Origin: Octopus sinensis
Taxonomy: Eukaryota
DNA: 64,000 nt
Direction of reading: 5' to 3'
NCBI RefSeq assembly: GCF_006345805.1
Contig: NC_043019.1
Location: 5,455,360 to 5,519,359 of the forward strand
Shown here: one piece after another, positions 2,038 through 59,881 of the stretch
How positions within the stretch are numbered: the stretch's first letter is position 1
How the letters are laid out: each line of letters begins with the position of its first letter
Made by a program: the position numbers and the translations under genes
Notes under the pieces: model-generated
Databases searched by the model: none
What the model saw: the letters and a program-made list of their open reading frames with translations, nothing else
What the model was told of the DNA's origin: nothing

Positions 2038-2764
2038 GTGAGTGGATAATTGTTCGTTAAAATATTTAATTAAAATTTTATGCAGTTATTATTTTTCTTC
2101 TCATTGTTTTTGCTGTGTGACCATTAACATAGAGATGGTCAATAGGGAGGATCAAATACCACAAGGTATTTTTGTTCAAAATCTCCTGTTTCTCAGTTTT
2201 CTTACTGATGTTTACACTTCTTAGCAAAAAGCTGTTGTGACAGACATGCACACATACATACACACTTATATGCAGAGTGTGTGTATGTGGTATGTATATG
2301 CAACATGTGTGTCTGTGTGTGAATATATGTGCGTATACATGTATATATACACACACATGTAAACGCAGACATACGCATCATCATCATCATTTAACGTCCG
2401 CTTTCCATGCTGGCATGGGTTGGACGATTTGACTGAGGACTGGCGAACCAGATGGCTGTCATATATGTGTGTGTGTGTACATTACACACTTGTGTGTGTG
2501 TAATTGTGACTATTTGTCCCCCACAACTGCTTGACAACTCGTGTTGGTGTGCTTACATCCCTGTAACATTTATTTAATATCATTTAGTAATATAATAACT
2601 AAAATATTATTATATTACTTAATAGTTGTATAATCATAAAGGCAGTGAACCTGCAGAACTGTTAGCAAAATACTTCTAAGTATTTTGTCCATCCTTACAT
2701 TCTGAGTTCAAATTCTGCTGAGGTTGACTTTGCCTCTCATTCGTTTTGGTGTTGATAAAATACG

Positions 2765-3155
2765 AGTGGCTGTGTGGTAAGTAGCTTGCTAACCAACCAC
2801 ATGGTTCCGGGTTCAGTCCCACTGCGTGGCACCTTGGGCAAGTGTCTTCTACTATAGCCTCAGGCCAACCAATGCCTTGTGAGTGGATTTGGTAGACAGA
2901 AACTGAAAGAAGCCTGTCATATATATATATATATGTATGTGTGTGTCTATGTTTGTGTGTCTGTGTTTGTCCTCCCACCATTGCTTGACAACCGATGCTG
3001 GTGTGTTTACGTCCCCATCACTTAGTGGTTCGGCAAAAAGAAACCGATAGAATAAGTACTGGGCTTACAAAGAATAAGTCCCGGGGTCGATTTGCTCGAC
3101 TAAAGGTGGTGCTCCAGCATGGCCGCAGTCAAATGACTGAAACAAGTAAAAGAGA
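2765..3155 (+). mobile_element. SINE S1, near full length
   Basis: GAGTGGCTGTGTGGTAAGTAGC A-box-like, GGTTCAGTCCC B-box-like, GGCACCTTGGGCAAGTGTC core, then the shared 3' body. Confidence 0.85.
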
Positions 3156-4865: not shown

Positions 4866-5464
4866 TTAACCTTTTAGTATTGAAACTGACCAACTCCCGC
4901 CTAGATATTCCATCTGTTTTATCTTGAAACTGGTCGGATCATGTCTCTCACACCTACCCTATAGTATCATTCTAAAAATAAACAATCACATCATTGAAAC
5001 CTCAAAGCTATGAGATAATTAATGATTAATTCAAAACAATAGGCGCAGGAGTGGCTGTGTGGTAAGTAGCTTGCTTACCAACCACATGGTTCCGGGTTCA
5101 GTCCCACTGCGTGGCACCTTGGGCAAGTGTCTTTTACTATAGCCTCGGGCCGACCAAAGCCTTGTGAGTGGATTTGGTAGACGGAAACTGAAAAGAAGCC
5201 CATCGTATATATGTATATATGTGTGTGTGTGTGTGTTTGTCACCCTAGCATTGCTTGACAACCGATGCTGGTGTGTTTATGTCTCCGATACTTAGCGGTT
5301 CGGCAAAAGAGACCTATATAATAAGTACTGGGCTTACAAAAAGAATAAGTCCCGGGGTCGAGTTGCTCGATTAAAGGCGGTGCTCCAACATGGCCGCAGT
5401 CAAATGACTGAAACAAGTAAAAGAGTAAAGAGTATTTGACGGTAATGCAAATACTAAATGTTAA
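4866..5464. mobile_element. TTAA-flanked (piggyBac-like) MITE interrupted by an S1 SINE at ~5041-5435
   Basis: TTAACCTTTTAGTATT ... AATACTAAATGTTAA ends; the internal sequence is related to the MITE at 34379-34611. Confidence 0.6.
5041..5435 (+). mobile_element. SINE S1, full length
   Basis: Complete head-to-tail copy. Confidence 0.85.
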
Positions 5465-7056: not shown

Positions 7057-8868
7057 GTTGAAATTTACAGAAAGACAAAAGACGAAGACAGGTGTATGAA
7101 CAACAAGCAGGTGTATTAGTTTGACGCTCGGGAAATTGAGGAAGTCTTTTACGTTTCGAGCCTACGCTCTTCAACAGAAAGGAATTAGAAAATAAACAGA
7201 GAGAGAATAAAAATCTTGTAGATTTAGCGATCCAGCATGGCGGATGGTTGGGAAAAATGGTTTGAATGGAGAGGTAGAAAGAAGGGGAGATAATAAAGTA
7301 TTGACGATCACAAAACGATGGTGGGCGTGCGTGTGTATGTAAGAAAGTGCAAGTGTATGTGCCTGTGTGGATAGAGGCTAGTGACTATGACGTGTGGATG
7401 TGTGCATCTGTAATGTGGGTATGCGGATGATAGCGTGTGAGTGGTGTGGGTGCTGGGAAGTGGTCAGTGCTAGTGCGTGTGGAGTGGTGTGATTGGTGTA
7501 GTGGTGTGGGGTATGCAGGAATTGGGGTGGGAATGGAGGGCGTATCAATGAAGAGAAGGTGGGTAGGTGTCGGAGCAAGAGAAGTCGGTAGGAGTGAAGA
7601 GAAGAAGTGTCAGATGAAGAGAGGAGAGGAGGGGAGTCAGATGAAGAGAGGAAGGGAGTTGAGCCCATGTGGCGCAAAGGAGTGGAGAGAGAAGATTAAT
7701 TTCTGTTCATGGCAAAGGCGGGAGTTCGGATGGACCCTGTGCAAAGACAATCCGAACACAGAGAGGTGTTGTAGTGCATGACCGGTAGAGCGGAAATGGT
7801 GCGAGACTAGGGTGTCATTGCCGATTCTAATGTCTCGGAGGTGCTCCGCGAACCAGTCAGCCAAGTGACGTCCCGTTTGGCCTATGTACAGAGAAAGAGC
7901 AAGAGATGAAGTAAATGACGTTGCTAGAAGTATCGGTGATATGACAGGGACCATGATGGATTCTTGTGAGGATGGTGGTGTTGAAGAGGTAGAGGCAAGT
8001 GCGGCAGCGTGGGTGGGAGCAGGAGAACGAATCAGTTTGAGAGGTAAGGAAACTGTGGACCAGGAGTCACGCAGGTTGTGGGCTGATTTTGAAGGAGGGA
8101 AAGGGTAGGTTGGGGAAGATGTGCGAGATGGAGTGGTTGGACTGGAGTCGCCGGAAAGCTCGGGGAAGGGTGCGTTTGATAGGTAGGGTGGAGGGTAGTA
8201 GATGACAGGAAGAGAGACCAGAGGCACAGTCCACGGAACGTGCTCTGGCAAGGGCTGTGTGGATAGTGGTGAGGGGAGGTCGCACCGATACAGTCGTCAA
8301 TATAACAACCGTATAGTTCGGGAGTGGGACTAGTGAATCGTGAGAATATTTGGGCCTCAACATAGCCAACGAACAGCTTCGAATAGTTGGGACCTATTTT
8401 CGTTCCCATGGCCACTCCCGAGACTTGTTGGTAAAAAAAAATCCCGCGAACGAGAAGCAGTTGAGGGAGAGGACAAGTTTGGCCAGACGAAGTGTGGAAG
8501 TATCAGGTTAAGGGTTGGGTCGAAGGTCTAGGAAGTGTTGGAGTGCAAGAAATCCTTCGTTGTGTGGGATCCCCGTATATAGACTCTTGATATTAAGAGT
8601 GAAGAGAAGTTTAGAGGGGCCAGCAGGGAAGGAGAAAGAGTTGAAGAAACGGAGAGCATGGTTAGTGTCGTGGATGTGAGCGGGGAGGGAAGCCACTAGG
8701 GGGAAAGGACACAGTCGAGGTATTTTGAGATCAATTTCGTGGGGCAGTTACAGGCGGAGACGATAGGGCTTGTGGATTTTGGGAAGAAGTAAATGGTGGG
8801 GGTTCGTGGAGTGCGGACAATAAGGTTGGAAGCAGTGGGAGGTTGGAACGTAGCGGCAGGCGAAATAT
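7057..8868 (-). mobile_element. Decayed, 5'-truncated Penelope-like element (RT + GIY-YIG) with hammerhead-bearing 3' terminus
   Basis: Frameshifted RT pieces LFTLNIKSLYTGIPH, AMGTKIGPNYSKLFVGYVE and YIDDCIGA. GIY-YIG piece LYIGQTGRHLADWFAEHLRDIR..VSHHF..EQKLIFSLHSFAPHGLN. The 3' end abuts (TA)n. Confidence 0.9.
7145..7182 (-). ncRNA. Minimal hammerhead-like motif, type B (CUGUUGA core variant)
   Basis: CCUUU-CUGUUGA-A-GAGC(GUAG)GCUC-GAAA-C-GUA-AAAGA on the minus strand, downstream of the PLE ORF. Confidence 0.6.
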
Positions 8869-10384: not shown

Positions 10385-10800
10385 CTCTTTACTCTTTTAC
10401 TTGTTTCAGTCATTTGACTGCGGCCATGCTGGAGCACCGCCTTTAGTCGAGCAAATCGACCCCGGGACTTATTCTTTGTAAGTTCAGTACTTATTCTATC
10501 GCTCTCTTTTGCCGAACCGCTAAGTGACGGGGACATAAACACACCAGCATCGGTTGTCAAGCAATGCTGGGGGGACAAACACAGACAGACAGACACACAC
10601 ACACACACACACACACACACCACACATATATACATATATACGACAGGCTTCTTTCAGTTTTCGTCTACCAAATCCACCCACAAGTCTTTGGTCGGCCCGA
10701 GGCTATAGTAGAAGACACTTGCCCTAGATGCCAACGCAGTGGGACTGAACCCGGAATCATGTGGTTGGTAAGCAAGCTACTTACCACACAGCCACTCCTA
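10385..10800 (-). mobile_element. SINE S1, full length
   Basis: Reverse-complement match. Confidence 0.85.
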
Positions 10801-12495: not shown

Positions 12496-13119
12496 ACCAC
12501 AGATATTGTCCGTCCCTGTCCACCTACTGCAACTACGTCACCTCTGACTGTTACTCTCACGCCATAAACGACCGTATTTTCTGCCCTTCGTCACATCTCA
12601 TATCACTTTTCTTTCTGCACCCATGACGGGATATAGTTATATATTGTAGTCATGCATACACACACTCACAATATATATATATACATACATACGCAAACAT
12701 ATATACGCATACACACACAAACACACACACAATGTATATATGTGTGTGTGTGCATGTGTGTGCACGTGTGTATGAGTGTGTGCGTGCATGTGTACGCTTG
12801 TATATATGCATGGGTCTCTCTCCCTCTCTCTGTCTCTCTCTTTATATATATATTTATATATCATCATCATCATCATCATCATCATTTTAACATCCAATGT
12901 TCCGTGTTCGCGTAGATTGGGCAGAATTTTGTTGGAATGGATTTCTTCTACGGCTCTATACAACTTCCTGACACATGCCCTCACCCGTTTCCAAGTAAGG
13001 AAACATTTTTCCATGATCAGACATATTTTCAGAGAAGATTGGAAACGAAGGACACCGCTTCCATAACGGGGACATTCGTTTCCGACTGACACACGTTGTC
13101 AAAGCAAGGAGACAATAAC

Positions 13120-13348
13120 ACACACTTATACACACACGCGCGCACTGATGCACACACATAAACACATACACACATACATACATACATACATACACACACA
13201 TATATATATATATACATACATACATACATACATGCATACATACATACACACACATATATATATACATACATACCTACATACCTACATACATACACACACA
13301 TACATACATACATTACATACATACACACACACATATATACACATACAA

Positions 13349-13381
<33 letters not shown>

Positions 13382-13740
13382 CATACACACACACATACAT
13401 ACATACATACATACATACATACATACATACATACACACACACATACATACATACACACACACACATACATACATACACACACATATATATACATACATAC
13501 CTACATACACACATACATACATACATACATACATACATACATACACACACATACATACATACATACATACATACATACATACATACATACATACACACAC
13601 ATATATATACATACATACCTACATACATACACACACATACATACATACATACATACATACATACATACATACATACACACACACATACATACATACATAC
13701 ATACATACATACATACATACATACATACATACATGTGTGT
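13120..13740. repeat. (TACA)n/(CA)n compound microsatellite
   Basis: Direct inspection. Confidence 0.95.
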
Positions 13741-13892
13741 ATGAGTGAAGGAGAGAGAGAAAGAAAAAGAGAGAGGGAGGGAAAAAGGGAGAGAAAGAGA
13801 GAGAGAGAAAGAGAGAGAGAGAGGTGAACTATTTCGAAATGGACACAGAAATCAACGAAAAATTTGATGTAGTAGTGAAAATTGATATTAAC

Positions 13893-14490
<598 letters not shown>

Positions 14491-14761
14491 TTTGTAGGAG
14501 CAAAATTGGAGCAATTATAAATCAATGGAATGAAATCAAGCGAAAAACGTTTAGGCCAGACAGAAATACAACAACAACAACAGCAGCATAAAATGTACGA
14601 ACACGCACTGTCCGAGTTGCACATGCTTGCATTATGAGCACCAACTGCATTTCTCACTGACCAACCAATTGGCAGCAATATTAACTCCTCCATAATATGG
14701 TTTTGTTTGTCTGGCCGTACACAGCCACACATTGATCCATCTTACTGAATATAACTGTTTC

Positions 14762-22300: not shown

Positions 22301-23933
22301 GTAAGTTTGGACTTGAGAAGTGTGCCAAGGCCACTTTCCAGAAAGGGAAAGTGAAGACCCACAATTCAGTCGTGTTAGATGTTGACACAGTCATAAGAGA
22401 GCTTGAGCAAGAACAAACATACAAATTTTAGGGATAAATGAAGGCTCTGGTATTCAGCATGCAAGCATGAAAGAGAAGATCAGGAAGGAATGTTATAGGA
22501 GAGTTCGTGCAGTCCTGAAATCTGAACTAAATGCGCGTAACAAGGTGTTAGCTATAAATTCCTTAGCAGTTCCAGTTGTTACTTATAGCTACAATGTGTT
22601 GAACTGGAATATGAGTGAAGTAAAGAATATAGATAGGAAAATACGCAAGCTGCTGAGTTGTAATAGGATGCACCACCCAAAGGCAGACGTAGATCGCCTT
22701 TACCTTCCCAGAGCCCAAGGAGGTCGAGGCCTGATCCAATTTGAACTAGCTTACAAAACAACCACAATTGGACTGGCCAAATATCTTGAAATATCGAATG
22801 ACTGGATGCTAAAGCTCGTGGAAAATCACGAGAGACGAAAGAAGCTTCATTCTATCATAAAGGAAAGCAAAAAATTTGCTATTGATCTCGTGCAGGATAC
22901 CCAAACTGAACAACCCGAGGGAAGTACGGCAACTATTGTTGCAAAGAAGGTGAAAATGATGGCAATGAAAAAAGCGCACGAGCAATTGGCTGATAGGTGG
23001 GAGGAGAAACCTCTGCACGGCAAATATGTGACCCGCAGCAAACAAGCTGATGTTGACCAGAAGCAAACCCATCAGTGGCTACGGAGCTCAGGGCTAAAAG
23101 CAGAGAGCGAAGGTTTCATCATCTGGCTGCTCAAGATCAAAGCCTATTAACCCGGAACTACCAGGCCAATGTGATGAAAAATGGAGCAGACCCAAAATGC
23201 CGATTCTGCAACGACATGATTGAAACAGTGGACCACCTAATCTCTGGATGTAAAGTCTTAGCACCAGTGGAGTATAAATTAAGACATGACAGAGTTGGCC
23301 AATATCTCCACTGGCTCATAAGTCGGCATTACAATATCAAAACTGCCGACAAGTGGTATAATCACCACCCTGAGGCTGTAACTGAAGGAGAAAATGTAAC
23401 CATTCTGTGGGACTTTCCAGTACATACAGACCGAACCATCAAGGCCAATAAACAGATATTGTTGTGAAAGACCAAAACAATAAAGTTTGCTTATTGATCG
23501 ACATGAGCATCCCCTGTGATCATAATATCTCAGCGAAAGAGTTTGACAAGCTCAGAAAATATAAAGACCTACTCATTGAAATTGAGAAAATGTGGCATCT
23601 CAAGCGGTTACAATACCAGTGATCGTAGGAGCACTAGGAATGATCAAGAAGGGAACCGAAAATTATATGAGAATGATCCCTGGCTTACCATCCCTGCAAG
23701 AAGTGAAAAAGATTGTCTTAACTGGTACATCACACGTATTGAGAAGAGCATTGTCGATGTGAGAACTGTTGCTGCTCATGTATTTTAATTTAACTTCAAA
23801 AAAAAAAAAAAATGAACGAACTATTGAGTTTGGTTTAATGGCCTACCAATGTATACTATGAGTTTCTTTGCCCTAGGAGTCGGGAAGACACTCGGCAAGA
23901 AATGGAAGCAAATTTGAAAGAAGAAAAAAAAAG
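22301..23933 (+). mobile_element. R4/Dong-clade non-LTR retrotransposon, 5'-truncated and frameshifted
   Basis: RT end (KFGLEKC..YK.LG, HPKADVDRLYLPRAQGGRGL), CCHC knuckle (CRFC..ETVDHLISGC) and RLE endonuclease (NKPDIV..LIDMSIP..K..KY). Embedded in (AAT)n on both sides; about four 1-2 nt frameshifts. Confidence 0.9.
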
Positions 23934-30614: not shown

Positions 30615-30822
30615 TATATTCTCTTTTACTCTTTTACTTGTTTCAGTCATTTGACTGCGGCCATGCTGAAGCACCACCTTTAATCGAGCAACTCCACCCC
30701 GGGACTTATTTTTTGTAAGCCTAGTAGTTATTATATTGGTCTCCTTTGCCGAACCGCTAAGTTACGGGGACGTAAACACACCAGCTTTCGGTTGTCAAGC
30801 AATGCTAGGGGGACAAACACAA

Positions 30823-30853
<31 letters not shown>

Positions 30854-31015
30854 CACGACAGGCTTCTTTCAGTTTCCATCTACCAAATCCACTCCCAAGG
30901 TTTTGGTCGGCCCGAGGGCTATAGTAGAAGACACTTTCCCAAGGTGCCACGCAGTGGGATGAACCCGGACCATGTGGTTGGTAACAAGCTACTTACCACA
31001 CAGCCACTCCTGCAC
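30615..31015 (-). mobile_element. SINE S1, full length
   Basis: Reverse-complement match; a second head fragment lies at ~30420-30590. Confidence 0.85.
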
Positions 31016-39525: not shown

Positions 39526-39990
39526 TATATGACAGGCTTCTTTCAGTTTCCATCTACTAAATAGGTGCAGGAGTGGCTGTGTGGTAAGTAGCTTGCTAAC
39601 CAACCACATGGTTCCGGGTTCAGTCCCACTGCGTGGCATCTTGGGCAAGTGTCTTCTGCTATAGCCCCGGGCCGACCAATGCCTTGTGAGTGGATTTGGT
39701 AGACAGAAACTGAAAGAAGCCCGTCGTATATATGTATATATATGTATATGTATATATATATGTGTGTGTGTATGTGTGTTTGTGTGTCTGTGTTTGTCCC
39801 CCTAGCATTGCTTGACAACCGATGCTGGTGTGTTTACGTCCCCGTCACTTAGTGGTTCAGCAAAAAAAAGGGACCGATAGAATAAGTACTGGGCTTACAA
39901 AGAATAAGTCCCAGGGTCGATTTGCTCTACTAAAGGCGGTGCGCCAGCATGGCCGCAGTCAAATGACTGAAACAAGTAAAAGAGTAAATC
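39300..39990. mobile_element. Abutting inverted S1 SINE pair (minus 39300-39555, plus 39565-39990)
   Basis: The minus copy is cut at GTTTCCATCTACTAAAT and followed directly by a plus-strand head. Confidence 0.8.
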
Positions 39991-42224: not shown

Positions 42225-42436
42225 TTTTACTCTTTTACTTGTTTCAGTCATTTGCCTGCGGCCATGCTGGAGCACTGCCTTTAGTCGAGCAAATCGACCC
42301 CGGGACTTATTCTTTGTAAGCCCAGTACTTATTCTATCGGTCTCTTTTGCCAAACCGCTAAGTGACGGGGACGTAAACACACCAGCATCGGTTGTCAAGC
42401 AATGCTAGGGGGACAAACACAGACACACAAACAAAT

Positions 42437-42487
<51 letters not shown>

Positions 42488-42655
42488 TATGACAGGCTTC
42501 TTTCAGTTTCCGTCTACCAAATCCACTCACAAGGCATTGGTTGGCCCGGGGCTATAGCAGAAGACACTTGCCCAAGGTGCCATGCAGTGGGGCTGAACCC
42601 GGAACCATGTGGCTGGTTAGCAAGCTACTTACCACACAGCCACTCCTGCGCCTAT
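42225..42655 (-). mobile_element. SINE S1, full length
   Basis: Reverse-complement match. Confidence 0.85.
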
Positions 42656-45374: not shown

Positions 45375-46400
45375 GGTGCAGGAGTGGCTGTGTGGTAAGT
45401 AGCTTGCTTACCAACCACATGGTTCCGGGTTCAGTATCACTGTGTGGCTCCATGGGCAAGTGTCTTCTTCTTTTGCCTCGGGCTGACCAAAGCCTTGTGA
45501 GTGAATTTGGTAGACGGAAACTAAAAGAAGCCCGTCATATATATATATATATATACATATATGTGTATTTGTCTCCCCAACATCTCTTGACAACCAATGC
45601 TGGTGTGTTTATGTCCCCTTAACTTAGCAGATTGGCAAAAGAGACTGATGAAATACATACTAGGCTTGCAAAGAATAAATCCTGGGGTCGATTTGCTTGA
45701 CTAAAGGTGGTGCTCCAGCATGACTGCAGTCAAATGAGTGAAACAAGCAAAAGGATAAAAGAATATATATATATGTATATTTATATAACCTGTGTGTGTG
45801 TGTGTGTGTGTGTGGAGCCAAAACCCTTATACGTTCACCAAAACAGGGTAGTATTGATTTTCAATTTAAACACTTACTGCAAGGAATGTCAAGGTATTAT
45901 AGTAGTCTTTGGGGTTATTCCCTACTTCCACAAAAAGTATCGAAGGGCCATACTAAGTTAACAGGGCCCTATCATTAAGAAGTTCTGAGAGAAAGGCTTA
46001 TGAAGGGACAATATTCAGAAGTTGGACTTTGGTCTTATCAAATATCACACTCACCATAAATACTTTGTAAGGATTCAATCATTAAATGAGAAGGGTTTAC
46101 TAGAAAATTGGACCTTTAAAACATTAGTTATATTATCTCTATAAAATGGTAGATTGAAGAAGCTCTCTAAGTATCTGTTAATCTCTGGTTTACTCTTTTA
46201 CTTTTTTACTTGTTTCAGTCATTTGACTGTGGCCATGCTGGAGCACCGCTTTTAGTCGAGCAAATCAACCCTAGGACTTATTCTTTGTAACCCTAGTACT
46301 TATTCTATCGGTCTCTTTTGCCGAACCGCTAAGTTACAGGGACATAAGCACACCAGCATTGGTTGTCAATCGATGTTGGGAGGACAAACATATACACACA
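45375..46400. mobile_element. Inverted S1 SINE pair (plus 45375-45760, minus 46190-46400)
   Basis: Opposite-orientation copies of the same body, 0.6-1.7 kb upstream of the transposase-derived exon. Confidence 0.75.
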
Positions 46401-47064
46401 TGCATATATATATATATATATATATATATCATCATCATCATCATTTAGCGTCCGCTTTCCATGCTAGCATGGGTTGGACAGTTCAACTGAGGTCTGTGAA
46501 GACAGAAGGCTGCATCAGGCCCAGTCTGACCTGGCAGTGTTTCTACGGCTGGATGCCCTTCCTAACGCCAACCACTCCGTGAGTGTAATGGGTGCTTTTT
46601 ACGTGCCACCCGCACAGGTGCCAGATGGAGCTGGCAAACGGCCACGAACGGATGGTGCTTTTTACGTGCCACTGGCACGGGGGCCAGGCGAGGCTGGCAA
46701 CGGATGATGGGCTTCTTTCAGTTTCTGTCTACCAAATCCACTCACAAAGCCTTGGTTGGCCCAAGGTTATAGTGGAAGGCACTTGCCCAAGTTGCCATGC
46801 AGTGAGACTGAGCCAGGAACCATGTGGTTGGTAAGCAAGCTACCTACCACGTAGCCTACCATCATTAATTTCATCAAAATCTACTTGTTCCTTAAAATTT
46901 AAAAATCTTGGCTAATTAACAAATTTCTGTAAAAGACTTTGTGTTATGTTTCGTGTTTTCTTTTCAATTGTTTTCCCCAAAATTAACCTTTCTTTTCTTT
47001 AAATTTATTTTTTGATATTCATTTTATGTTTTTGTTTTTCTTTCTAGTTCAAGATAACAACAAC

Positions 47065-48846
47065 ATGTTCCCGGTCTTCAACCCCGTGCTGCAGTCACCA
47101 GCGACCAACCATGTCTCATCTCCAGTCTCTCTGGCGCCATCCTTCACTCGTCCCAGCCGTGGAGTCGCTACAGCTTTTCCATTGCCCCAGCTGCAGTCGC
47201 TCAACCAAACGTCGGTGCCACAAGCTGCTGCCAAACTTCGCCATTCTCAACCTCAACATTCTTATTATCACCATCAACTGCAGCATTTTCCCAAATCATC
47301 CCAGCAGCAGCAACAGCAGCAACAACAACAGCAGCAGCAGCAGCAACAACTCCAGCATCACAGACAACAGCAACAGCAGATACAGTTGCCACAAATACAT
47401 CATCTACAGCAGTTGAAGCAGCAACAACAACAGCAGCATCATCTGCAGCAGCAGAAACATCAACAAGAAGAACATAAGCTACTCTCACAGTCACCCCATC
47501 ATGTGTCACTACCATCACAGCATCATCAACAGCATCATCATCAACAACAACAACAACAACATCACCATCACCAACAACAACAACAGCAGCAGCAACAACA
47601 ACAACAGCAGCAGCAGCAGCAACCAATGTTTCGAGTGTATTCTCCTATTCAAGAACCAGGTGAAATCTTGTTACCTCCCCTGCAGCCAGTCAACCAGAAA
47701 CATCTGTTATCATCGGTGCATGAAAATGTATTGATGCCTCACCAAGACCAGCCACAGCAATGTCAAGATGGCCAGAAGAAAGCTATACCTCAGACAAACC
47801 CTGAACCACAATCAAAAGAAATTGAGAAGGACCACAAGAGTACCCAGGTACAATCCCATGTCAATACGACAGTTGGCTATCAAAAGGTGGAGAAGACATG
47901 TCCAATGCGATTCATTGATTTATTGAAGAATTTAAGCCACGTTGAAGGTACAATTGCTTGGTGCATGGACCTAGGCCTGATTCCGTCATCTCATACGTGT
48001 CACCGGTGTGGTGCAGTGATGCAGCTAAAATCTTGTCCAGCTTCTGTGACAACTGATGGTTACATATGGCAGTGTAACAAACAAAAATCTGGTATCAAGT
48101 GCGACACTTCTCGGTCACTGCGAGCGGGCAGCTGGTTCTCCCAGAGCAATCTGACTCTTGAAGAGGTTCTACAGATCACGTATTGGTGGACCCAATGTGT
48201 TTCTGAAGACTTCCTTGTTTACCAAACTGCAGTTAGTAAACCATCTGTTCTTGATTGGTGCAACTATTGCCAGGAACTCTGTTTGACCTACTTGATGAAA
48301 CAGAGCCAATGCATCGGAGGACCAGGGACAGTTGTAGAAATTGATGAAGCCATGTTTTATGGTCGGAATGGTCATCGTTTGTCTGGTCAGTGGATTTTCA
48401 GTGGCATTCAACAGAAAAGTAACTGGTCTTGCTTTATCTTCCCTGTTGGAGAAAAAACAGATGGAACTGGTCTTATAGAGGTTATTGAACGCTGGGTGAA
48501 ACCTGGCACGACAGTCCTGTGTAACTGGAACCCTACTGACCGCCTCACTGACGACGGACATACATACCTGAAGTTTACATACAATATGACCTTCAAGTGT
48601 GTGGAGGAGATGGAGGTGAATGATGGATGCATCAATGAGAATGGTGATTTGTCTCTGAAGGACACCCCTGTGATTGCAAAGAATTTCTGGAAGGAAATTC
48701 GTGCATCTTCCACATCAACAGATAATGCGACCTGTGAAACGATAACATTTGATAGTGCAATGGCAGAAAGTATCTGGCGTAAACAACAAGGAGAAGAAGA
48801 TATCTTTCTTTCATTTATCAAAGCTGTTAAATTTGCCTATAGTTAG
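47065..48846 (+). CDS. PolyQ/H-rich protein fused to a Merlin/IS1595 (ISXO2-like DDE) transposase domain; probable domesticated gene, 593 aa from the first in-exon ATG
   Basis: Uninterrupted ORF behind a strong acceptor (TTTTTCTTTTTCTAG, 47047). From ~47905: Zn ribbon CHRC..DGYIWQC..C, SLRAGSWF..SNL, DWCNYC.E.C, IGGPGTVVEIDE, GQWIFSG, PGTT, MAESIWR and DIFLSFI, all colinear with eukaryotic Merlin transposases. The true N-terminus may lie in upstream exons. Confidence 0.9.
   Translation: MFPVFNPVLQSPATNHVSSPVSLAPSFTRPSRGVATAFPLPQLQSLNQTSVPQAAAKLRHSQPQHSYYHHQLQHFPKSSQQQQQQQQQQQQQQQQLQHHRQQQQQIQLPQIHHLQQLKQQQQQQHHLQQQKHQQEEHKLLSQSPHHVSLPSQHHQQHHHQQQQQQHHHHQQQQQQQQQQQQQQQQQPMFRVYSPIQEPGEILLPPLQPVNQKHLLSSVHENVLMPHQDQPQQCQDGQKKAIPQTNPEPQSKEIEKDHKSTQVQSHVNTTVGYQKVEKTCPMRFIDLLKNLSHVEGTIAWCMDLGLIPSSHTCHRCGAVMQLKSCPASVTTDGYIWQCNKQKSGIKCDTSRSLRAGSWFSQSNLTLEEVLQITYWWTQCVSEDFLVYQTAVSKPSVLDWCNYCQELCLTYLMKQSQCIGGPGTVVEIDEAMFYGRNGHRLSGQWIFSGIQQKSNWSCFIFPVGEKTDGTGLIEVIERWVKPGTTVLCNWNPTDRLTDDGHTYLKFTYNMTFKCVEEMEVNDGCINENGDLSLKDTPVIAKNFWKEIRASSTSTDNATCETITFDSAMAESIWRKQQGEEDIFLSFIKAVKFAYS
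47265..47625 (+). repeat. Coding CAG/CAA/CAT repeats (polyQ/polyH)
   Basis: In frame within the 47065 ORF. Confidence 0.9.
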
Positions 48847-49359
48847 TGACTAGGTTAAGCTGGATAATCCTTCCAAAGGTGAGACTTTGAGGTCAGTTGT
48901 GAGGAAAAAAGAACAAATAAAAAAAAATTATTGCACAAATTTGGTCATGATTTGAGGGGAACATTGAAGAGAAAGTGACATTTGGCATCGTGTGATGGGA
49001 GAAAGAAATAGAAGGAATTCCTCAAAGATTCCCACTTCTTAGCCATTGATGCCACTGTCTGTCGGCGGCATTCCCCACCCCTAGGAAATGTCATCATGTG
49101 TCCCCCCCCCACTACTTTCAATATTGGTGGAAAGGCATGTTCATCACCAGACATTCTTCACATATTGTTTTGGAAACAAACAAAAAAAAAATATATTACA
49201 TAAACTTACCAAATCTCTATGACTTCTTCAGACTTTCCATTACCTGACATTTTATGAAGAGAATGGTAGATTTTTGGAGGTGGATGAATAATGAAGAGGA
49301 GACAAAGACATCCTTGCCAAATTCATTATCAAGGTCATTCAGTACAGTTTCTCACTCTA

Positions 49360-51014: not shown

Positions 51015-51179
51015 GAGTGGCTGTGTGGTAAGTAGCTTGCTAACCAACCACATGGTTCTGGGTTCAGTCCCACTGTGTGGCATCTTGGGCAAGTGTCTTC
51101 TGCTATAGCCCCGGGCCGACCAATGCCTTGTGAGTGGATTTGGTAAGCGGAAACTGAAAGAAGCCTGTCGTATATATGC

Positions 51180-51213
<34 letters not shown>

Positions 51214-51415
51214 TTGTGTGTTTGTGTTTGTCCCCCTAGCATTGCTTGACAACCGATGCTGGTGTGTTTACGTCCCCGTAACTTAGCGGTTCGGCAAAAG
51301 TGACTGATAGAATAAGTACTGGGCTTACAAAGAATAAGTCCCGGGGGCGATTTGCTCGACTAAAGGCGGTGCTCCAGCATGGCCACAGTCAAATGACTGA
51401 AACAAGTAAAAGAGA
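51015..51415 (+). mobile_element. SINE S1, full length
   Basis: Head, internal microsatellite and body present. Confidence 0.85.
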
Positions 51416-59242: not shown

Positions 59243-59881
59243 TTTTTAGGGTTTTTTCAATCAAGGCCATGCTGCCAACAAAAAAGCACGCGGAGTTCTG
59301 TTTTTGATTCGACGGTCATTCGGAATGCTCACAGCCGCTATATTCCTACTGCTCTATGTCACGCAGGTGAGACCCATATTGGAGTATGGGATTCAAGCCT
59401 CTTCTCCTTATCTCCTCAAAGACATACAGCATCTCGAAAAAGTCCAGAAGCTGGCTACCCGCATGGTTCTTGGTCTCAAGCATTTGTCTTATGAAAAAAG
59501 GCTGAAGACACTCGACCTTTATTCTCTAGAAAAACGCAGCCGCCATGGTGACATCATAAGCGGTAAGTGTAACCTCTCGAAAGAGCTGTTCTTCACTCCT
59601 GCTCCAGAGCGTTGGCTGCGGGGTCACTCCGAAAAGCTCTATCTGCGATGATTTCATCTCAATTGAAAGAGAGGGGCTTTCTCCGTCCGGGTTGCGGATC
59701 TGTGGAATAAGCTACCGGACGAGATAGTGAAGATGCCAACGACCGCTCAGTTCAAAGTCTCCCTTGACCACAAGTGGCCTGAACTCTTTACATGAACACC
59801 ACCCTGTACATAACTCCATGTTCCACTACATGGCCTTGCTTTTTGCTTTTTGAGCCAAATAATTAACTAACTAACTAACTA
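59243..59881 (+). mobile_element. CR1-clade LINE 3' end with (TAAC)n tail, nested in an S2-related SINE
   Basis: LYVTQVRPILEYG..LEKVQKLATRM..LSYEKRL..LYSLEKR..RGHS..FSVRV..WNKLP; TSD ACAAAAGG at 59235-59242 and 59882-59889. Confidence 0.9.

Follow-up and report, generated by a model that had tools for sequence, protein, structure and literature searches.

The locus raises the question of whether a long open reading frame (ORF) at 47026-48846 on the forward strand is a remnant of a mobile element or part of a host gene. It lies in a 64,000-nucleotide (nt) window of the Octopus sinensis genome (contig NC_043019.1, positions 5,455,360 to 5,519,359, assembly GCF_006345805.1), by which is meant the whole stretch of DNA that was analysed and to which all positions refer. 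The ORF is the sole long non-repetitive ORF of the window. Its exon most likely represents the main coding exon, and the last, of a coleoid host gene present in single copy, which arose from a domesticated Merlin (IS1595-like) transposase. Sequence comparison indicates that the gene is transposase-derived and conserved from octopus to at least one cuttlefish, and that its product, having lost two of the three catalytic carboxylates (D-N-x), is predicted to be catalytically disabled.

The stop-free frame spans 47026 to the stop codon TAG at 48844-48846, with a TGA directly 3' of the TAG. A pyrimidine-rich tract of about 70 nt ends with AG at 47046-47047, which places the exon start at 47048; entry is in phase 1, and 47050 begins the first in-frame codon. 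The initial annotation, made from the sequence alone, had described a 1.8-kb stop-free exon behind a strong splice acceptor, and this exon was confirmed at 47048-48846 on the forward strand. Hereafter, amino acid (aa) 1 corresponds to the codon at 47050, and domain residues are numbered within the C-terminal 328 aa (aa 271-598). The 593-aa product starting from the ATG at 47065 was recorded once as an exact match, in the Octopus sinensis chromosome record CM016881.1 (assembly GCA_006345805.1). The 606-aa form starting from the ATG at 47026 was not on record, and a cluster look-up of the 593-aa product in the protein collection found it absent.

To identify the C-terminal domain, whose 314 residues have an ordinary composition, aa 271-598 were searched exhaustively with phmmer against a library of 1.84 billion representatives. 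The search returned 3885 homologues with E<=1e-3, 1190 with E<=1e-10 and 33 with E<=1e-30. The best had E values of about 1e-40, and typical homologues were about 300 aa long with 30-39% identity. The Pfam profile PF12762 (DDE_Tnp_IS1595) was matched by 10 of the 10 top homologues tested and by 56 of the 60 members of alignment A2; all three cephalopod sequences (octopus and the two species described below) were among the four members without a match. By transitive homology at the sequence level, the domain is assigned unambiguously to Merlin/IS1595. A phmmer search of the PDB sequences gave no match. Two top-scoring proteins with 10-12 matched stretches, P0005 (1611 aa) and P0006 (1750 aa), were discarded as special relatives, being ordinary Merlin units concatenated. 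Each comprises 4-5 consecutive units (PF12762 in 4-5 stretches, together with helix-turn-helix (HTH) and Zn-ribbon matches), and they reflect either elements arrayed in tandem or fused gene models.

An AlphaFold2 model built on alignment A2 reached a predicted local distance difference test score (pLDDT) of 83.7 and a predicted template-modelling score of 0.82. From its N-terminus the model runs through helices, a beta ribbon where the Cys cluster lies and a helical bundle into a beta-beta-beta-alpha-beta core, and it closes with C-terminal helices. The best PDB matches found by Foldseek were the catalytic cores of retroviral integrases and the ISCth4, TnsB and IstA transposases (E 2e-4 to 5e-2, probability 0.8-1.0), with low template-modelling scores since the match is at the level of the domain. 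Among the PDB matches, no solved structure was closer than these integrase and transposase cores. The domain is confidently predicted to have the RNase H-like fold of DDE transposases.

The protein was then compared with 86 transposon-like homologues in a single alignment. An intact DDE triad was present in 46 of them, and columns conserved in at least 75% of these 46 were taken as family-conserved. In the DNA-binding part (residues 1-150: N-terminal helices, zinc ribbon and helical region), the octopus protein retained 16 of 18 such positions, against an average of 86% in the transposons. In the catalytic part it retained 24 of 45 (53%), and no DDE-intact transposase fell below 73%. The two fractions argue for selective decay of the catalytic signature next to an intact DNA-binding signature. 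The zinc ribbon was kept as initially annotated, with all four Cys (C47, C50, C72, C81) present; C72 is invariant in alignment A2, where C47 and C50 reach a conservation of at least 90%, and C81 matches the transposable element (TE) consensus. Beta strands were modelled at residues 55-86, and the ribbon and helices had pLDDT values above 90. The most conserved segment, 48145-48309, shows 87% identity between octopus and Sepia.

In the catalytic part, the first Asp was found at 48343-48345 (EIDE), as the initial annotation had it. The second position reads CNW, where the TE consensus is SDxW. The HTNxIExxW block, which bears the catalytic Glu in transposons, is replaced in octopus by ...VIAKNFW, and the GKRKYxRG and HLxVNHS motifs are degraded. 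The triad is D-N-G in octopus, D-N-Y in Sepia and D-N-C in the third species. The alignment thus bore out the earlier description of the altered SDxW and IExxW positions and of the degraded RKYxRG and HxTVNH motifs, as well as the view that catalysis was lost while DNA-binding residues were kept. An insertion of about 17 aa had also been described; against the Sepia orthologue it measures 12 aa, and comparison with the TE consensus adds about 4 aa more, so its length is not clearly 17. Two proteins with Asn at the second catalytic position, P0036 and P0038, were rejected as distant orthologues, as the tree places both with transposon-like sequences elsewhere.

Word-index searches revealed one cluster, P0001-P0004, with 69% identity over the domain; beyond this Sepia cluster they found only one TE-like protein, P0155. 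One member of the cluster, P0002 (587 aa), is carried by 25 RNA-seq-derived contigs, and run SRR20545809 among these is from Sepia esculenta (PMC9538352). Contig L017 (run SRR27666070) represents a third species, referred to as species C, and shows 91% identity to Sepia over the domain. The related cephalopod contigs were at most 4.9 kb long. With a slash marking the junction, Sepia mRNA contig L008 reads ...TTTGAAG/TTCAAGAAAAC, the unspliced Sepia contig L001 reads ...CTTTCAG/TTCAAGAAAAC, and the octopus window reads ...TTCTAG/TTCAAGATAAC; intron position and phase are therefore identical. The Sepia esculenta mRNA contigs L007-L016 were spliced at the homologous acceptor in the same phase, and so was the mRNA of species C (L017). 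The gene is transcribed and spliced in Sepia and in a third species.

The upstream exon of Sepia supplies the start codon and 34 K/E-rich residues, without a recognisable domain. Contigs L001 and L007 aligned colinearly and without gaps, at 98.7% identity, from the acceptor to a point beyond the stop codon, so that in Sepia, too, the terminal exon is single and large. At the nucleotide level, the Sepia mRNA resembled the window only over 47880-48847, i.e. within the coding sequence, and the similarity ended at the stop codon. Octopus, Sepia and species C have in common the intron position, its phase, the single large terminal exon and the position of the stop. The Sepia transcripts differed at their 3' ends: L001 is a short form with poly(A) about 80 nt after the stop, behind an AATAAA, and L007-L016 carry a 3' untranslated region (UTR) of 2-3 kb, which suggests alternative polyadenylation. 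In the 5' UTR or promoter-proximal sequence of Sepia (L008:100-180), a palindromic TGACGTCA site resembling a cAMP response element (CRE) was seen together with CpG-rich sequence; TGACGTCA had zero occurrences in the octopus window.

Selection on the domain was estimated for Sepia and species C, a decapodiform-like pair. The ratio of non-synonymous to synonymous substitution rates (dN/dS) was 0.03-0.05 by the NG86, YN00 and maximum-likelihood methods, with dS of about 1.0-1.5. This is far from 1 and speaks for purifying selection. In comparisons with octopus, dN was 0.15-0.17 and dS was saturated. All subdomains are tightly constrained except residues 251-296 around the lost Glu. When Sepia is compared with species C, identity is 97% for residues 151-224 of the dead core and 100% for the C-terminal helices. 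In a tree with the 86 transposon-like homologues, the three cephalopod sequences formed one clade with 100% support. Its stem measured 1.15 substitutions per site and its tips 0.05-0.22, compared with a median tip of 0.8 for the remaining sequences. The octopus/cuttlefish divergence is a few hundred million years old. The gene is at least as old as this split, and has been under strong purifying selection along the whole fold since before it.

The N-terminal half evolves very differently from the domain. The Q/H/P/S-rich stretch of about 280 aa that had been annotated ahead of the domain was confirmed as 284 aa, consisting of 31% Q, 10.6% H, 8.8% P and 7.7% S, in which a Pfam scan found no domain. 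Runs of Q and H occupy aa 85-100, 124-131 and 157-191, with mixed codons (CAG 53, CAA 50). This half is barely alignable between octopus and Sepia (about 25% identity), and its dN/dS of 0.33-0.42 between Sepia and species C is much freer than that of the domain. The Sepia counterpart has Q/S/T/P/A-rich repeats and no pure polyglutamine (polyQ). The pure polyQ/H runs are a feature of the octopus lineage, and what the species have in common is a long low-complexity N-terminus. The initial annotation had presented the gene as a fusion to a polyQ domain. A Q-rich region does precede the transposase domain, but both are encoded by one exon; there is no separate fused exon or recognisable host domain, and the polyQ is octopus-specific. 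Because the Q-rich region lies within the transposase exon and no host domain can be recognised, the gene is a domesticated transposase in its own right that has acquired a presumably disordered region, and does not represent the classical fusion of a host domain with a transposase.

The surroundings of the ORF were inspected for terminal inverted repeats (TIRs) and target site duplications (TSDs). Inverted repeats do bracket the ORF (46201-46856 versus 51015-51414). As TIRs these repeats (I2/I8) were rejected, being copies of an element of about 400 bp that occurs at least 12 times in the window in both orientations. Besides dispersed-repeat copies, no TIRs or 8-9 bp TSD were found around the ORF, although short degraded TIRs could still be present. 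The earlier observation of no TIRs or TSD nearby therefore stood as regards TIRs, but had passed over the flanking repeat copies. The transposase-derived domain is present in one copy in the window, and an exact-sequence search gave a single occurrence of the protein for the Octopus sinensis assembly. In the phmmer library, nothing lay between about 47% identity (short fragments at 42-47%; domain-spanning matches at most 39%) and 73% (an orthologue fragment), and there is therefore no recent transposon family behind the gene.

Taken together, the domestication of a Merlin transposase put forward in the initial annotation is supported by orthologues, by spliced mRNAs in two other species, by the dN/dS of 0.03-0.05 and by the lack of TIRs; as far as the data reached, none of the refuting outcomes named there was seen. 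The product is most likely a cephalopod-specific DNA-binding regulator, to go by the pattern of conservation, and a role in transcription or chromatin is inferred. The protein would no longer cut DNA and would act as a sequence-specific DNA-binding nuclear factor. Its Zn-ribbon/HTH module would recognise DNA, possibly through motifs descended from Merlin terminal repeats, and the conserved dead core with the C-terminal helices may provide dimerisation or a protein scaffold. Activation or multivalent interaction could be contributed by the fast-evolving, Q-rich disordered N-terminus (polyQ/H in octopus).

Several results weigh against a domesticated host gene. Neither the full protein nor its C-terminal 328 aa matched PF12762 or the zinc-ribbon profile PF12760, even at E<=10, and neither matched NCBIfam. 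Thus the ISXO2-like domain of the initial annotation is upheld by transitive homology (E about 1e-40; PF12762 in 56/60), but a profile search of the protein itself finds nothing. A broken triad is not diagnostic on its own, as 40 of the 86 transposon-like homologues also deviate from DDE. An octopus 5' exon was sought in window positions 1-47047 by tblastn with the 34-aa Sepia leader, by blastn with the Sepia 5' end, and by a donor-aware phase-1 peptide scan combined with a CpG/CRE scan, and none of the three gave anything convincing. The protein collection, queried with the unique N-terminal 85 aa, yielded no octopus transcript fragments; the annotated splicing of the host exon is therefore borne out by the mRNAs of Sepia esculenta and species C at the homologous acceptor, but not by octopus fragments. 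L017 has one apparent frameshift at 200-260, in the low-complexity part with the domain open, which in this single contig may be an assembly error or real. Finally, single-copy status across the genome refers to the exact protein sequence only.

The simplest rival is that the ORF is an old, non-domesticated Merlin copy left open by chance, and that its cephalopod relatives are copies of the same family rather than orthologues. Merlin is abundant in octopus, a 2021 survey having counted 191 sequences in O. bimaculoides (PMC8101967), and mutated triads are common among transposon-like homologues. Chance, however, does not sit with a dN/dS of 0.03-0.05 at a dS of around 1 or more, nor with an identical intron position and phase and spliced mRNAs in two other species. 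TIRs were not found and nucleotide similarity stops exactly at the stop codon. The cephalopod clade combines a long stem with very short tips and has the D-to-N change in all three sequences, and the next relatives, at about 39% identity or less over the full domain (42-47% in short fragments), leave no recent family. This explanation is largely refuted and scarcely credible.

Domestication might also have served other ends. In genome defence, the dead protein would bind the ends of active Merlin elements and block transposition, as a repressor or dominant-negative partner. Such a role would fit a DNA-binding signature kept as fully as in active elements (16/18), a conserved core with the potential to heterodimerise and the unusual abundance of Merlin in octopus, and it is a live alternative, albeit an unlikely one. 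Binding to present-day Merlin ends or partners would be unexpected without co-evolution, given the long stem and closest transposases of about 30-40% identity, and the very slow evolution of the DNA-binding part fits fixed host targets better than an arms race. An enzymatic role is harder to sustain still. A domesticated transposase still active on DNA, or contributing to a complex for recombination or repair as a subunit without catalysis, would explain why the first Asp is kept and why the whole RNase H-like fold, dead core included, is strongly constrained (residues 151-224, 97% between Sepia and species C). However, other residues stand in place of two of the three carboxylates that bind metal, and the third position varies among orthologues (G/Y/C) within the most relaxed, low-confidence part of the protein, which carries the 12-aa indel. 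Residual catalysis is unlikely, and this explanation as a whole is very improbable. The DNA-binding host regulator remains the preferred reading.

The positions of the features are collected in Table 1. The element of about 400 bp consists of two conserved halves around a dinucleotide microsatellite, and the copy at 46201-46856 has extra sequence between the halves. A unit of about 62 nt from this repeat family is tandemly amplified at 1100-1442 and 46591-46700, and the tandem units yield spurious ORFs (MLFTCHRHRCQ...HWHGGQARL) at 1101-1466 and 46592-46834. A 567-aa 'ORF' at 13029-14732 is nearly all tri- and dinucleotide microsatellites (poly-Thr, poly-Ser and CA/TG runs) and does not represent a gene; such microsatellites take up a large part of the window, including 25-26 kb, 31-33 kb and 51.6-54 kb. 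The initial annotation had called every other TE coding remnant of the window frameshifted or truncated, a remark that was followed up by spot checks. Two ORFs overlap in different frames at 22467-23467 and represent the tail of a non-LTR (long terminal repeat) retrotransposon, broken by a frameshift; the second matches zf-RVT weakly, at an E value of 1.7e-4 that does not reach the Pfam cut-off. Two reverse transcriptase-like ORFs, 7637-8415 on the reverse strand and 59304-59651 on the forward strand, had no Pfam match.

Table 1. Features of the Merlin-derived exon and its surroundings, in window positions
Feature	Position	Strand	Basis
Intron end, pyrimidine-rich tract with AG acceptor	46975-47047	+	Sequence; homologous acceptor in unspliced Sepia contig L001, spliced in L007-L016 and L017
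Large terminal coding exon, phase 1 entry	47048-48846	+	ORF; 593-aa product on record; Sepia nt similarity stops at stop codon
Low-complexity region, aa 1-284, Q/H/P/S-rich, presumably disordered	47050-47901	+	Composition, alignment, dN/dS, no Pfam domain
PolyQ tract 1, 16 Q, aa 85-100, CAG/CAA mixed	47302-47349	+	Composition
Poly-Q/H tract, aa 157-191	47518-47622	+	Composition; not present as such in Sepia
Merlin/IS1595 transposase-derived domain, 314 aa	47902-48843	+	phmmer, PF12762 in homologues, AlphaFold2, Foldseek, dN/dS
C4 zinc ribbon (CxxC...C...C), Cys codons at 47998, 48007, 48073, 48100	47998-48102	+	C47, C50, C72, C81
Helical (HTH-like) DNA-binding region, predicted	48145-48309	+	Model helices 100-148; conservation
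RNase H-like former catalytic core with C-terminal helices	48310-48843	+	Model, Foldseek, 24/45 positions kept
First catalytic Asp, kept (EIDE)	48343-48345	+	Alignment
Second catalytic position, Asp to Asn (CNW)	48523-48525	+	Alignment; octopus, Sepia and species C alike
Degraded region of the third residue (Glu), with 12-aa octopus-specific insertion	48610-48747	+	Alignment, model; sole relaxed, low-pLDDT domain segment
Candidate polyadenylation signal AATAAA	48916-48921	+	70 nt past stop; Sepia L001 likewise AATAAA then poly(A)
Dispersed element of about 400 bp resembling short interspersed elements	46201-46856, 51015-51414, 42230-42645, 39571-39984, 30629-31009, 10392-10797, 5049-5425, 2764-3154, others	both	At least 12 near-full copies, 82-92% identity

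New DNA-binding regulators have repeatedly arisen from domesticated transposases, and cephalopod genomes are noted for their heavy load of transposons and for genes new to the lineage. A conserved, predicted-dead transposase with a variable Q-rich tail is thus a concrete candidate for a lineage-specific regulator. The gene looks like a coleoid innovation, because relatives of intermediate similarity were absent from the library of 1.8 billion proteins. Screens based on Pfam overlook genes of this type, since the profile is dominated by the catalytic signature, which is the part that decayed. In the literature searched, neither a Merlin-derived host gene in animals nor a paper linking the domain to cephalopods was found; what is new is a domesticated DDE transposase from a superfamily, Merlin, not previously documented there as an animal source. 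A more far-reaching proposal, tentative and on balance rather unlikely, would make it a coleoid-specific transcription regulator with Merlin-derived terminal repeats or miniature inverted-repeat transposable elements, dispersed over cephalopod genomes, as its sites and with the polyQ/H expansion tuning activation or condensates, the first documented Merlin-derived host gene of animals. If this were true, a single domestication would have yielded a new factor together with a lineage-specific cis-regulatory network already in place.

Compared with Merlin/IS1595 elements (IS1016, ISXO2-like), the gene shows homology to PF12762-bearing proteins at E values of about 1e-40 and the same order of N-terminal helices, C4 zinc ribbon, helical region, RNase H-like core and C-terminal WR...F..F helix. 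It differs in having D-N-x instead of DDE and in the erosion of GKRKYxRG, SDxW, VNHS and HTNxIE. It also lacks TIRs and TSD, is spliced, carries a low-complexity N-terminal extension of 280 aa and falls below the Pfam threshold.

Among DDE domestications that kept DNA binding and lost catalysis are the pogo-derived CENP-B and POGK/POGZ/TIGD and the Harbinger-derived HARBI1/NAIF1. The cephalopod gene resembles them in an intronless transposase ORF retained as one exon, loss of TIRs and catalytic residues, a DNA-binding domain kept under strong purifying selection, and orthologues across a large clade. Unlike them, it stems from the Merlin superfamily and is, as far as seen, restricted to coleoids. 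Another known class comprises the vertebrate transcription factors in which a KRAB, SCAN or BTB domain is fused to a transposase. There too, splicing joins an upstream host exon to the acceptor of a transposase exon and the DNA-binding domain is reused; in contrast, the Sepia upstream exon encodes 34 K/E-rich residues and no domain, and the Q-rich region lies in the transposase exon itself.

Within Merlin, the survey limited its proposals of domestication to certain protist ORFs in which the DDE motif is kept (PMC8101967). These putative cases, in Perkinsela, Symbiodinium, Perkinsus and others, are similar in being conserved Merlin-related ORFs without TIRs or TSD (PMC8101967). They keep DDE_Tnp_IS1595 and the DDE motif, and were proposed without tests of orthology or selection, whereas the cephalopod gene has a dead active site, and its orthology, splicing and dN/dS are documented.

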